A stretch of 64,000 nucleotides of DNA, from sequence record NC_070882.1; one strand, written 5' to 3'. The translations under genes were made by a program, and so were the position numbers. The notes beneath the pieces are model-generated. The model ran no database searches. It saw only the letters and a list, made by a program, of their open reading frames with translations, and was not told the DNA's origin. Below, piece by piece: positions 45,623 through 55,756 of the stretch (positions are counted from its first letter, which is position 1; each line of letters opens with the position of its first letter).

Positions 45623-45629
45623 TTAAAGG

Positions 45630-45826
45630 TTACGCACTATCATATGCGTTTCCTGATCCTTTACGATAGCTCTTTTACAATTTGGTTAAGCTGGGCTGAA
45701 ATTCAGCGATCGACACGATGGGTTAGAGTCCCATCACCTTTAGGGGTCTTCCATCGGCTGATCCCTGTGACTAGTGTCACAACCAACCTTGAGCTCCCTC
45801 CCCTTGATCGGGGGAGGGGTTTATTT
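45630..45826 (+). ncRNA. candidate structured ncRNA of about 190 nt ending in a terminator
   Basis: Nested helices and hairpins (see findings); terminator tccctcccc/ggggagggg-TTTATTTT at 45795-45826. Confidence 0.45.
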
Positions 45827-45852
45827 TGTCTCTCGTCAATAGGAACCTTCAA

Positions 45853-46320: not shown

Positions 46321-46837
46321 TCTACGTATCCCCACTGAGATCATTCCTATTGGTCTGTGCTGTCTTTGGGCGCGCGAACAATACGTTGATCCAAATGGTA
46401 ATTATCTATTCACTGCCAAAGAGGTTATTAGAGGTATCCATCTGGATAAGATGGTGGAAGAGTTTAATAAAGCTATGCGTGAACATTTCTATCATAGCAA
46501 CCACATCGAGATCACTCTCCATGGTATCGAAATCAAAGATAACAAAGTCCATTACTTTCATCAAGAACCTGCTGTTGAGTTCTATGATAAAGTGAAAGCA
46601 CAGTATTGCAACGTTGAGCTGGCTCGTTATGATGCTGACGTAATGGACAAAGACCTGTTCTTTGATATGGTGTCGAAAGAAATCGCTGACCTGAGTAAGA
46701 TGATCATGCAGCATATCTACTTTAAGTTTGACCGAGTACAAGCGGAGACCTGGTCTCGTTACCTGCTAGCACGTGGATCTAATAAAAGAAACGGGACTGG
46801 TCTTGAGTCAGTTGACGTAGAAGTTAAACTCTCGTAA
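46307..46837 (+). CDS. hypothetical protein
   Basis: RBS AAGGAG; start MQLSD. Confidence 0.7.
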   Translation: MQLSDLRIPTEIIPIGLCCLWAREQYVDPNGNYLFTAKEVIRGIHLDKMVEEFNKAMREHFYHSNHIEITLHGIEIKDNKVHYFHQEPAVEFYDKVKAQYCNVELARYDADVMDKDLFFDMVSKEIADLSKMIMQHIYFKFDRVQAETWSRYLLARGSNKRNGTGLESVDVEVKLS

Positions 46838-46864
46838 AAGAATACTTGAGTTGTAATGATATAC

Positions 46865-47235
46865 GAGGACTAATGTCCCAACAGAACAGAGGTCACCCGG
46901 ATCATCTCCCCTAAGGCTCCCCGTCGCCATATTAGGGTGCCGCAGTGACCTCACCTTATTCCCACTAGCTTTCGGTGTAAGTGGGCTCTCTCCGCATAAG
47001 ATCGGAGAGACTAACAGCGATCCATGCCAAAGGATCAAGCCGAAGCAGGTATATTGACTTGGCCGTCTTTATATCTGAAGTTACGACGGTTACTACCTCC
47101 AGTTGAGAGGGGTATCCCCGAGTGGCGTTACCTAACCAGATGGGTGCCGACCCGTAATCGGTGCCTTAGCTGGCCAGCTTTCTGGTAAGGTAATCTAACG
47201 AATAGCCCGCTCCTCAACGGAGCGGGTTTTATTCC
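46865..47235 (+). ncRNA. candidate large multi-domain ncRNA of about 370 nt, family unknown
   Basis: No credible + ORF; at least 9 helices by eye; closes with terminator agcccgctcc/ggagcgggtt-TTATT at 47204-47233. Confidence 0.6.
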
Positions 47236-47266
47236 GTCTCAGCTTGTAAACAGGAGAATATAAAGA

Positions 47267-47944
47267 ATGACTATTGTCATATGGGATGGTAAGGATCTTT
47301 TGGTCGATCGAGTTACTACGATCACCCAGAGCGATATCACTGGAGAGGATGGTACACCACAACCATACTACGTGGAACTTGACAAGTCCAAGATCTATCT
47401 TGCTTCTGAGAACAAATGGGAAGCTAAAGTCTGGGGTCGAGCTATAAAAGCATTTACAATGGTTGGAGATACGGAACATCGTCATTGCTGGCTGAATTTC
47501 TTGGAGACAGGAGATGATGTACATAGTCTAGCAGAGACCGCAAAGAATTTCCAACACCTGCTTACGCCTAATGCCGAATACATCCTCATCGATGAGGATA
47601 ATGTTCTTCATGTGTTCGAATCAACCCATGACATGTTTAGGAGCAATTATTATTCCACGCCTGCACGGAAACCAATCATCTTTGGATGCGCTGTAGCGGT
47701 TGAACTGCTGAATAATGTATTCACCTCGGCTGAGAACAAACTGAGTCCGTTGGAATGTATGGTTCTAGCGCAAGCACATTATCCCGTTTTGGGTAGGCGG
47801 TTTGACCACTGGAATGCTGAATCTAATATACTCACACGTGACAACGACCTTAGTGATCGTGCACGTCATTGGGTTGCTAGTCGAGCAGTGAAAAAGATTT
47901 CGGTTAACTCTAAACCACGCCCAGTTAATATCGTAAATAGGTAA
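47267..47944 (+). CDS. Ntn-hydrolase (HslV/proteasome-beta-like) protein
   Basis: Starts M-T-I-V-I-W-D-G-K-D-L-L-V-D, placing Thr at the N-terminus after Met removal; RBS AGGAG. Confidence 0.55.
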   Translation: MTIVIWDGKDLLVDRVTTITQSDITGEDGTPQPYYVELDKSKIYLASENKWEAKVWGRAIKAFTMVGDTEHRHCWLNFLETGDDVHSLAETAKNFQHLLTPNAEYILIDEDNVLHVFESTHDMFRSNYYSTPARKPIIFGCAVAVELLNNVFTSAENKLSPLECMVLAQAHYPVLGRRFDHWNAESNILTRDNDLSDRARHWVASRAVKKISVNSKPRPVNIVNR

Positions 47945-50932: not shown

Positions 50933-50971
50933 GAAAATTGAATACTCTCGTATACTATTAGACACGAAGTA

Positions 50972-52552
50972 TTATTTAATTTCGTATTCGACTACAGGTG
51001 CTGTTTTAGAAACATCACCGCTGAATCTATATACACCAGCTGATGTAATCACCATTTCTTCATACGACCTAATTGTAGGGAAAGGATCTCCGATTAGCTC
51101 TGGTTCTTTATTAAGTTGTACCAATGCTAACTGTGTTGTAGTATTATTCGTAATATAGATATTGTTGCCGAAAACAATAGACCTATACGTCGAATACTTA
51201 TTAGCCGGTGCATTTAAAGGGATGGTCTCAGCGGCACTAAAATCGGGACTAATTTTTATATAGTCCGTTGGTGTGATATTTGTTCCACCAATAGATAATC
51301 TACCTTGAGATGCAACAATAACTAATTCGTTATTATCATTAAATCCAAGATCGTGATGCCAAGCCTCAAATGGTAGAATATTTTCAATAAGATCGATTGA
51401 GTAGGAGGTTAGATCAACCGTTATAATACTCTTATGGATCTTATCGTTTCGACCAGAGAAACCACCGACAATATAGAGTATGTCATCTTTAACTATACTG
51501 GCTGTACGTTCGATGTAGTAAGCGTCAACCAAACCTGGAATAGCCGCGAGCTTTTTAGTTTCCCAGGTATCAGTAGCTATGGTGTAAATATAAATAGTTG
51601 GCCCAGTTGACAATGGGTTACCATGAAGAATTAATTTACCGTTACTGTAAACCATATTCGTGGTAGTGGTTTCACCTTGGAATGGCACAACCGATGGTAA
51701 CTTAGTCCATGTTTTTGTATCCATGTCTAATCGATGTAGGTCGGACATGAAAGCAGTTGGTCCAGTTGTATATCCACAAGCCATATAGATATCATTGTTA
51801 TCCGAGTCATATGCAAGCACTGGCATCCCACGTTGTGGTGGTGGATTTACTGTCGATAGTACAGACGATAAACCTTTAAGTTCCTTCGGTGGAATATATT
51901 CTAGTACTGGACGCCATCCTCTATAATTAGTAGCTTCCGTCGGTGGGTGTCCGTCGTAAACATAAACTCCATTCTTTGCCTGGGGATGAGTAGACGAAGG
52001 CGAGAACTGTAGATAATTACCATTTGTATTTCTATTAGCCGCCCAGCTATAACTACCGCCTTCAGCACCTATAAGTTGAGAATCTGTATATTTCGCCCAG
52101 CTTCCTTTGGTTGTAACGTTACCAAAAATATCCCATAACTCGGAACCTTCATTACCTTGGGTAGTAATATCAGAATAAGGATTTTCACCTGCATTCATAA
52201 GACGGACTTTAAACATATTTCCGTCAATTACAATAACTTTACTACCATCTATTAAACCAGCGGTATCAAGTTGGTTTGGACTAATGGATCGGAGAATAGC
52301 TGTCTTTGAATAATACATGACAACATTATTCCTAGATACCTTAATCCAGCCGGCATCGGTATTTATGCTACCAATGGAATCGAGTTCAACAAGTGTTCTT
52401 AACTGAGGGTAAGTTATAAACTTATCACTTGCTAACTCACCATACAGACCAAGTGTCGAATCACCGTATTCAAAGGTAGAGGGACCGGGTAATTTATTTT
52501 CTGTTACCTTAATGAGTACTGACAACAACGATTCAAACATAATTTTATCCAT
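50972..52552 (-). CDS. virion-type N-terminal domain fused to a Kelch-like beta-propeller
   Basis: LYGELASDKFITY...GWIK...FKVRLM...GWRPVLEY module, then Kelch-type repeats (IYMACGY, LYIVGGF). Confidence 0.7.
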   Translation of the reverse strand: MDKIMFESLLSVLIKVTENKLPGPSTFEYGDSTLGLYGELASDKFITYPQLRTLVELDSIGSINTDAGWIKVSRNNVVMYYSKTAILRSISPNQLDTAGLIDGSKVIVIDGNMFKVRLMNAGENPYSDITTQGNEGSELWDIFGNVTTKGSWAKYTDSQLIGAEGGSYSWAANRNTNGNYLQFSPSSTHPQAKNGVYVYDGHPPTEATNYRGWRPVLEYIPPKELKGLSSVLSTVNPPPQRGMPVLAYDSDNNDIYMACGYTTGPTAFMSDLHRLDMDTKTWTKLPSVVPFQGETTTTNMVYSNGKLILHGNPLSTGPTIYIYTIATDTWETKKLAAIPGLVDAYYIERTASIVKDDILYIVGGFSGRNDKIHKSIITVDLTSYSIDLIENILPFEAWHHDLGFNDNNELVIVASQGRLSIGGTNITPTDYIKISPDFSAAETIPLNAPANKYSTYRSIVFGNNIYITNNTTTQLALVQLNKEPELIGDPFPTIRSYEEMVITSAGVYRFSGDVSKTAPVVEYEIK

Positions 52553-52791: not shown

Positions 52792-52848
52792 ATGTAGAAT
52801 ATGCTTAACGCTAATCCTTACATATAATCACTACGCCAGTATTTGTTT

Positions 52849-55713: not shown

Positions 55714-55756
55714 GAAATCTGATATAGTCTTACATAGTATTACTATACAAGTATTT

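Follow-up and report, generated by a model that had tools for sequence, protein, structure and literature searches.

Introduction

PhiKZ-like phages build a nucleus with a protein wall, possess RNA polymerases of their own and rank among the leading candidates for phage therapy; to our knowledge, their RNA biology has barely been charted. Phage T4 encodes the stable RNAs C and D (species 1 and 2) together with its tRNA genes, and these RNAs of ~120-140 nt are cut out of tRNA precursor transcripts. The ROOL and GOLLD RNAs, ~580-800 nt in length, are associated with phages or prophages and are often found near tRNA genes.

For phiKZ itself, an ONT-cappable-seq study reported many short RNAs derived from 5'UTRs by premature termination, widespread conditional termination in 5'UTRs, and promoter-proximal ncRNAs marked by a mapped start, mapped termination within ~250 nt and an abundant short RNA (PMC10914365). 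The phiKZ middle promoter consists of a TACT centred 22 nt before the start with an A repeat ahead of it (PMC8244752), and a tRNA gene of 201phi2-1 is reported to be driven by a middle promoter (PMC11512511).

Here, we describe a real, conserved and structured plus-strand RNA of Pseudomonas phiKZ-like phages that corresponds to no Rfam 15 family. The portion of the literature open to searching yielded no prior description of it.

A non-coding locus between a promoter motif and a terminator

The window, i.e. the whole 64-kb stretch of DNA analysed, is a 100% match to the Pseudomonas jumbo phage vB_PaeM_PS119XW (MN103543, genus Pawinskivirus, 301.5 kb). Positions 46838-47266 are annotation-free in the PS119XW GenBank record and are flanked by two hypothetical genes. 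The RNA locus spans 46866-47233 on the plus strand, with a promoter motif on its 5' side and an intrinsic terminator on its 3' side.

46836..46866, +, promoter: A-rich run, AATACT (46841-46846), 13 nt, TATA (46860-46863)
46841-46863, +, copy of AATACT-N13-TATR upstream of the RNA
50951-50973, 52821-52843 and 55733-55755, -, copies of AATACT-N13-TATR, each directly upstream of a tRNA gene
47206..47233, +, intrinsic terminator from a terminator scan: GC-rich stem-loop 47206-47226 plus U-tract
47267..47944, +, gene for an HslV-like (Ntn-hydrolase-type) protein, downstream context outside the RNA

The motif 5' of the RNA, AAAAGAATACT-N13-TATACGAG, agrees with the published phiKZ middle-promoter description (PMC8244752) and with the reported middle promoter at a 201phi2-1 tRNA gene (PMC11512511). 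It predicts a transcription start at ~46866. In the 64-kb window, AATACT-N13-TATR has four exact copies where 0.37 would be expected; 0/100 shuffles reached this number, and the three copies other than that of the RNA are located directly 5' of the tRNA-Thr/Asp, tRNA-Leu and tRNA-Tyr genes. This arrangement suggests a promoter subclass serving stable RNAs. The nearest tRNA gene is 3.5 kb away from the RNA locus.

On the 3' side, the terminator scan reported the palindromic stem at 47206-47226 as read on the reverse strand, and the RNA probably ends at ~47230. Both predicted ends agree with the coordinates of the initial annotation of this region, a reading of the bare sequence that had proposed a new phage ncRNA. 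An equivalent promoter motif precedes each homologue, and each has its own terminator at its 3' end: in every case a GC-rich hairpin followed by UUUAU, with stem sequences that differ freely. Downstream of the U-tract, a similar sequence, UUUAU..(C)GUCUC, was observed at 47227-47245, at 45820-45835 and in the homologues; it may contribute to the signal at which the phage RNA polymerase terminates.

On the plus strand, ~1 kb upstream of the RNA, there is another conserved non-coding gap.

45623-45852, +, second gap: promoter-like TATCATATG, more hairpins, strong terminator (45795-45819)
45717-45736, +, T-arm-like hairpin GAUGGGUUAGAGUCCCAUC, with the canonical GGGUUCGAGUCCC in PhiPA3

A gap is present at the matching position in PhiPA3, phiKZ, Psa21, RVTF4 and D6. 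The segment 45623-45852 received no Rfam, tRNA or tmRNA call and may encode a tRNA-like ncRNA.

Comparison with known RNA families

The initial annotation had noted that a cmscan match would make the RNA a known one. At gathering level, cmscan against Rfam 15 returned the seven tRNAs of the window alone, with no match at the RNA region. The best sub-threshold match was Thr_leader (RF00506; 47130-47236, 28.5 bits against a cut-off of 55). We rejected a threonine operon leader, as the match is below the cut-off, covers only the 3' stem and the terminator, and is accompanied by no Thr/Ile-rich leader peptide. The 201phi2-1 homologue had no Rfam match, and neither it nor the window region matched ROOL, GOLLD, OLE or other large orphan RNAs at gathering level or at E ≤ 10.

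Further candidates were rejected individually. ARAGORN called no tmRNA in the window and neither a tRNA nor a tmRNA at the RNA locus, and no Rfam tmRNA model matched even at E ≤ 10. The bacterial, archaeal and other RNase P RNA models of Rfam 15 gave no match at E ≤ 10 either. A group I or II intron is contradicted by the lack of any intron model match, by the locus having its own promoter and terminator, and by the flanking genes, of which the upstream ORF has its own stop and the downstream gene its own ribosome-binding site and start codon. Rfam 15 and ARAGORN concur with the original impression that hallmarks of tmRNA, RNase P, introns and tRNA are missing. An rRNA mimic or antisense RNA was considered on account of anti-Shine-Dalgarno-like strings and of CCCGUC and GAAGU, which we take to resemble the 16S decoding site; when the RNA was aligned locally to E. 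coli 16S and 23S rRNA in both senses, the top scores were within the shuffle distribution, and the Rfam SSU and LSU models did not match the RNA region. Nor is the CUCC string retained in the 201phi2-1 group, which has AUCUCUC.

Folding of the whole RNA

The plus strand folds at -147.4 kcal/mol, compared with -118.6 ± 5.5 kcal/mol for dinucleotide shuffles (z = -5.24; 0/100), and the minus strand reaches z = -2.5. Across three genera, the folding z-scores were -5.2, -3.0 and -3.3. A z-score near zero against dinucleotide shuffles, or homologues devoid of compensatory changes, had been named beforehand as outcomes that would speak against the RNA; the measured value is -5.2, and compensatory changes are abundant in other jumbo phages. 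The strand signal from G-U versus A-C pairs (10 vs 5) is weak.

All helices listed in the initial annotation are present at the positions it gave (see the feature lists below), and compensatory changes back most of them. One exception is gccgtc/gacggt (47062-90), which is not kept in relatives; these instead keep a two-tier hairpin, AGGUAUA/UAUAUCU around GAC-UUGGCC-GUC, and we therefore discarded the gccgtc/gacggt pairing. Taken together, the fold, Rfam and homologue tests support the proposal of an undescribed, large, helix-dense phage non-coding RNA ending in a terminator.

A conserved core of ~87 nt

The 5' part of the RNA comprises a small hairpin and a compact core.

46867..46878, +, 5' hairpin GGAC-UAAU-GUCC (ggac/gtcc at 46867-78), kept with changed sequence in PhiPA3 (GGAA-ACAU-UUCC) and 201phi2-1 (GGAG...CUCC)
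46876..46962, +, core motif, ~87 nt with four covarying helices
46889-96 with 46945-52, +, core helix Pa (gaggtcac/gtgacctc, with ccctaa/ttaggg inside)
46898-900 with 46940-42, +, core helix Pb
46901-08, +, core internal loop AUCAUCUC
46909-14 with 46932-37, +, core helix Pc
46915-17 with 46926-28, +, core helix Pd
46918-25, +, core apical loop UCCCCGUC
46938-39, +, core bulge UG
46953-60, +, core 3' tail ACCUUAUU

Twenty sequences were aligned with MAFFT (alignment A3). At core pairs, 86% of the cells are paired, compared with 62% in shuffles (0/500), and the covariation score is 0.66, compared with 0.23 (0/500). Sliding the partners by 1-3 columns as a control lowered this score to ≤ 0.17. 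Both sides have changed in 18 of the 21 core pairs. The unpaired bases are invariant: AUCUC and UG on the 5' and 3' sides, respectively, of an asymmetric internal loop, YCCCGUC in the apical loop, and CCUA downstream of the last helix. A covariance model of the core, R1, matched the window at 82.7 bits (E = 1.7e-22) and, across 24 distinct loci from phages or metagenomes, matched exactly once in each.

Distribution and size classes

Blastn matched the region in seven Pawinskivirus-like phages and, in PhiPA3, the non-coding part alone. Of the flanking proteins, the downstream one is 33% identical in PS119XW and PhiPA3, and the upstream one is undetectable; that blastn matches the RNA and not its flanking genes we count as selection on the RNA itself. 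Compared with HPP-Temi, PS119XW is 100% identical in the core, 97% in the middle part, 79.5% in the 3' domain and ~74% in the flanking genes; the higher values of core and middle part we count likewise as selection on the RNA.

With a profile from the first alignment, the syntenic sites of phiKZ, 201phi2-1, Viktualia and Psa21 matched weakly, as did RVTF4; the D6 homologue was recognised by eye. Querying IMG/VR and metagenomes with an alignment of a conserved neighbour protein (phiKZ gp287-like) added 29 further loci; a search of IMG/VR for close relatives with a single-protein query had returned no match. Relatives of the RNA occupy the syntenic site in the Pseudomonas phiKZ-like lineages examined wherever the sequence reached that site. 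The exception is the locus L026, which is long enough and has no core match. The RNA family is conserved across at least five named genera.

Two size classes were found. The short form consists of the core, ~12 nt and the terminator (~110 nt in total) and is carried by phiKZ/PA7, Psa21, RVTF4, D6, Phabio and several uncultured relatives. In the long form, 250-300 nt are inserted between core and terminator, giving 365-480 nt overall (~365 nt in PS119XW); it is carried by PS119XW-like phages, PhiPA3, 201phi2-1-like and Viktualia-like phages. The model R2 had no match in the ~10-kb loci of short-form phages, and the whole-genome contigs of PA7, Psa21 and Phabio do not contain the exact extension pattern. 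In 201phi2-1 (L018 6088-6190) and Viktualia (L009 ~1535-1630), the 5' hairpin and the core are separated by an additional ~100 nt. In the long forms of these groups this insert forms a long stem, CCCGUGAU...AUCACGGG, plus a hairpin, and the RNA reaches ~470-480 nt.

Pattern searches delimited the family further. The exact extension pattern had six true matches in IMG/VR, all on ~300-kb jumbo-phage contigs that also contain the core, and 11 further chance matches in coding sequence. A loose core pattern gave more than 120 chance matches in IMG/VR, and only known jumbo-phage contigs passed the model; R1 rejected all unrelated IMG/VR sequences matching the loose pattern (74 of 79 loci tested). 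Among 185,579 bacterial and archaeal genomes, a strict pattern matched 36 times, which equals chance level, and none of these matches had a core. In the sequences searched here, the family occurred in Pseudomonas phiKZ-like phages alone.

Extension and 3' domain of the long form

The extension alternates conserved blocks with hairpins that keep the architecture and vary in sequence.

46961..46985, +, hairpin H3 (CCCACU/AGUGGG; cccact/agtggg at 46961-85), with the compensatory change CCCUC/GAGGG in PhiPA3
46969-46975, +, CUUUCGG block in the H3 loop, invariant across all long forms
46987..47010, +, hairpin H4 (UCUCUCCG/CGGAGAGA; tctctccg/cggagaga at 46987-47010), present with other sequence in PhiPA3 and 201phi2-1 (CCGUCCC/GGGAUGG)
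47019..47036, +, hairpin H5 (GAUCC/GGAUC; gatcc/ggatc at 47019-36), loop AUGCCAAA with conserved CCA, covarying
47040..47046, +, CCGAAGC block, invariant, with complementarity to the UUUCGG of 46970-75
47047..47076, +, hairpin H6 in two tiers, with outer stem AGGUAUA/UAUAUCU, inner stem GAC/GUC and the conserved UGG in the loop UUGGCC
47077..47083, +, GAAGUUA block, invariant across all long forms
47084..47127, +, variable hairpin region H7, a hairpin in each lineage with unrelated sequences
47109-19, +, helix gggg/cccc
47123-47127, +, conserved U(G/A)GCG, 3' of H7
47128..47193, +, 3' three-way-junction domain (H8, H9, H10)
47128-40 with 47181-93, +, outer stem H8, ttacctaaccaga/tctggtaaggtaa, the 12-of-13-bp stem seen in the initial annotation
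47142-50 with 47158-66, +, hairpin H9 of the 3' domain
47168-79, +, hairpin H10, AGCU-GGCC-AGCU, holding the near-invariant palindrome CUGGCCAG (47170-77)

The conserved blocks are thus CUUUCGG, CCGAAGC, GAAGUUA, URGCG and CUGGCCAG. The Viktualia-like group has other hairpins in place of H4. In H5, both sides have changed in all five pairs (nine distinct sequences) and 93% of cells are paired; in the outer H6 stem, both sides have changed in all four pairs and 92% of cells are paired, and the H6 architecture recurs in every long form folded singly. Jointly, H5 and H6 are paired in 85% of cells versus 56% in shuffles, with a covariation score of 0.91 versus 0.32 (0/500).

RNAalifold pairs UUUCGG with CCGAAG in 10/10 long forms, and the minimum-energy fold of the 201phi2-1 RNA contains the same pairing. 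This makes it a candidate pseudoknot, one that covariation cannot test because both blocks are invariant. A loop-loop contact between the CCA of H5 and the UGG of H6 is likewise a candidate: the permutation test for this kissing loop was not significant (1724/5040), the loop-flanking bases change together in a few lineages, and RNAalifold offers the palindrome as an alternative partner.

Because the MAFFT registers of the 3' domain differ between lineages, we tested H8 by duplex energies and permutation instead of column-wise pair counts. Strands of one and the same phage form a duplex with a mean of -13.3 kcal/mol, compared with -6.0 kcal/mol for strands combined across lineages, and only 2 of 40,320 permutations performed as well. 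The three-way junction was predicted independently in several lineages.

Coding potential and neighbouring genes

The RBS-led 13-codon ORF pointed out at the 5' end of the region is present (46873-46914, +) and is not conserved because its ATG is ATT in PhiPA3. The ORFs of 41, 54 and 76 codons are not conserved either; indels and the lost start codon disrupt the small ORFs among relatives, and we rejected a coding function. Other phage records contain hypothetical-protein genes on the RNA or terminator, namely HHBS36_1 (L004 1782-1907), HPP-Temi (L003 3282-3407 and 3404-3499), Viktualia (L009 1586-1867 and 1947-2036) and 201phi2-1, where the gp425 start overlaps it (L018 6505-6573). These genes are probably spurious; for gp425, the ATG at L018 6574, which is preceded by a ribosome-binding site, is the more likely start.

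The protein encoded at 47267-47944 (starting MTIVIWDG...) weakly matches phrog_25842 (E = 9e-4). This family is defined by phiKZ gp289, which also matches, more weakly, the HslV peptidase family phrog_1040 (E = 1e-5). The product is consistent with an N-terminal-threonine hydrolase, as had been guessed initially. About 35 nt separate the terminator from this gene, which leaves no room for a promoter of the type found at the RNA. Downstream of the RNA, 17 of 23 loci contain an HslV-like gene, in some cases after one or two other genes. It was not detected near the RNA in the other six (201phi2-1, Phabio and the four metagenomic relatives L032, L039, L042 and L046). The suspected link between the RNA and the Ntn-hydrolase-like gene thus holds in part only, and we rejected an obligatory one in view of these 6/23 loci. 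The first gene 3' of the RNA differs between lineages and does not belong to one family.

On the 5' side, PhiPA3 gene 354 (L002 3600-4004; 134 residues), just upstream of the RNA, is annotated as 'putative phage integrase' and is not a detectable counterpart of the upstream protein of PS119XW. For a lytic jumbo phage, this label seems doubtful.

Discussion

Covariation in the core, H5, H6 and H8 argues for a structured RNA, and its own transcription unit, its independence of neighbouring genes, the lack of attenuator logic and the lack of coding potential argue for a separate RNA gene. Judging from these sequence features, we see an even chance that the locus encodes a separately transcribed, stable, multi-domain non-coding RNA of ~365 nt, whose core would bind a conserved partner and whose extension would be accessory. 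The phage's own RNA polymerase would initiate at ~46866 and stop at ~47230, and partial read-through of the terminator would allow expression of the HslV-like gene. The ~87-nt core would be the working module, its invariant unpaired bases forming the surface that a single conserved partner, most probably a protein, recognises. The extension would act as an accessory tertiary-fold module, with the candidate UUUCGG/CCGAAG pseudoknot, a loop-loop contact, the three-way junction and the palindromic GGCC loop, and would make the particle more stable or provide a further interaction. The RNA would act in trans, as a ribonucleoprotein component or a decoy, in the middle or late phase of infection.

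The promoter-less position of the HslV-like gene behind the RNA in 17/23 loci counts against a separate RNA gene, as it also fits a cis-acting 5' leader or attenuator. In this main rival explanation, which we consider less likely, the core would sense a protein or small molecule and set read-through into a downstream operon of the HslV-like peptidase and its neighbours, with the short RNA as a by-product. Promoter, structured domain with invariant loop bases, terminator and ribosome-binding site follow one another in the same order in all homologues, the core resembles a sensor in having its invariant loop bases within covarying helices, and no space for a second promoter exists after the terminator. 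Conditional termination in 5'UTRs is also reported to be widespread in phiKZ (PMC10914365), and the short form could be one of the premature-termination 5'UTR RNAs described there. What makes us doubt this explanation is that no mutually exclusive antiterminator pairing is visible: terminator stems vary freely while the core stays constant, and no upstream segment covarying with them was seen among more than 20 homologues whose alignments were judged by eye. Moreover, the first downstream gene family varies by lineage, with the HslV-like gene missing near the RNA in six loci; a 250-300-nt extension with tertiary contacts of its own is hard to reconcile with a simple attenuator; and the exact promoter pattern occurs elsewhere in the window at tRNA genes alone.

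The size of the RNA, its several invariant single-stranded blocks, the candidate pseudoknot of invariant sequences, the near-invariant palindromic GGCC loop and a tRNA gene cluster a few kb away would also suit a ribozyme, or a homo-oligomer assembling via the palindromic CUGGCCAG hairpin in the manner of ROOL or GOLLD. We consider this reading very unlikely, given that the ribozyme and large-RNA families of Rfam 15 do not match, the loop-loop covariation test was not significant and no cleavage or ligation site can be named. Because the short forms lack the whole extension, such an activity cannot be the common function of the family. We give hardly any credence to a DNA-level element (for replication, packaging or protein binding) or small proteins as the cause of the conservation. 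The palindrome TGGCCA could bind a protein, and the records of HHBS36_1, HPP-Temi and Viktualia contain annotated short ORFs within the region; however, compensatory changes preserve base pairs and not codons, indels and start codon loss break the ORFs between relatives, the promoter and the terminator U-tract set one strand, and the plus strand folds much better than the minus strand. A broader proposal, which we consider improbable, is a new functional RNA class specific to nucleus-forming jumbo phages, with a high-affinity aptamer or decoy core and a self-folding, possibly dimerising or catalytic extension. If true, the core would target a factor from the host or the phage, such as a component of translation or immunity or a small-molecule signal, and the RNA would be the phage equivalent of the large orphan RNAs and would take part in the phage-nucleus life cycle.

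Returning to the separately transcribed RNA, its conservation across at least five named genera makes it likely that it serves a need of these phages. It is held tighter than the neighbouring genes, shares its promoter type with phage tRNAs and, in some lineages, has grown from ~110 to 365-480 nt by an added tertiary-fold module. RNA structural biology thereby gains a new multi-domain fold in naturally minimal and expanded versions that can be compared, and phage biology a defined target for knock-down, pull-down and localisation. The annotations of small hypothetical proteins on the RNA can be corrected.

Among described systems, terminator-type riboswitches and protein-binding leaders are similar in placing a compact domain with invariant unpaired loop bases ahead of a terminator and a gene. 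They differ from the PS119XW RNA, which matches no Rfam family, whose downstream gene varies, and in which alignments judged by eye showed no alternative antiterminator pairing. The short ncRNA candidates of phiKZ and 201phi2-1, intergenic or derived from 5'UTRs, in the ONT-cappable-seq (PMC10914365, PMC11512511) and Grad-seq (PMC8545117) reports come from the same phage group and likewise combine a phage promoter with a close intrinsic terminator upstream of a gene. For one 201phi2-1 sRNA, conservation across genera has likewise been reported. The ~110-nt short form fits the layout of the phiKZ promoter-proximal terminated ncRNAs, and the phiKZ copy may be among the 17 phiKZ candidates (PMC10914365); the long form exceeds 250 nt and falls outside the 201phi2-1 study, which kept only units below 250 nt (PMC11512511). 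The examples given in the available portions of these reports are located elsewhere (upstream of gp182/gp277, PHIKZ221, PHIKZ302, p40 and PHIKZ297/298), and those portions describe no family, covarying structure or long form. ROOL and GOLLD share the large size, the many helices and the association with phages and tRNA genes; the PS119XW family is smaller (365-480 nt), and its ~87-nt core also occurs alone. Like T4 RNAs C and D, compared by description, the PS119XW RNA is phage-encoded and presumably stable; the T4 RNAs are co-expressed with the phage tRNAs, whereas the PS119XW RNA has a promoter and a terminator of its own and belongs to a family that extends up to ~480 nt.
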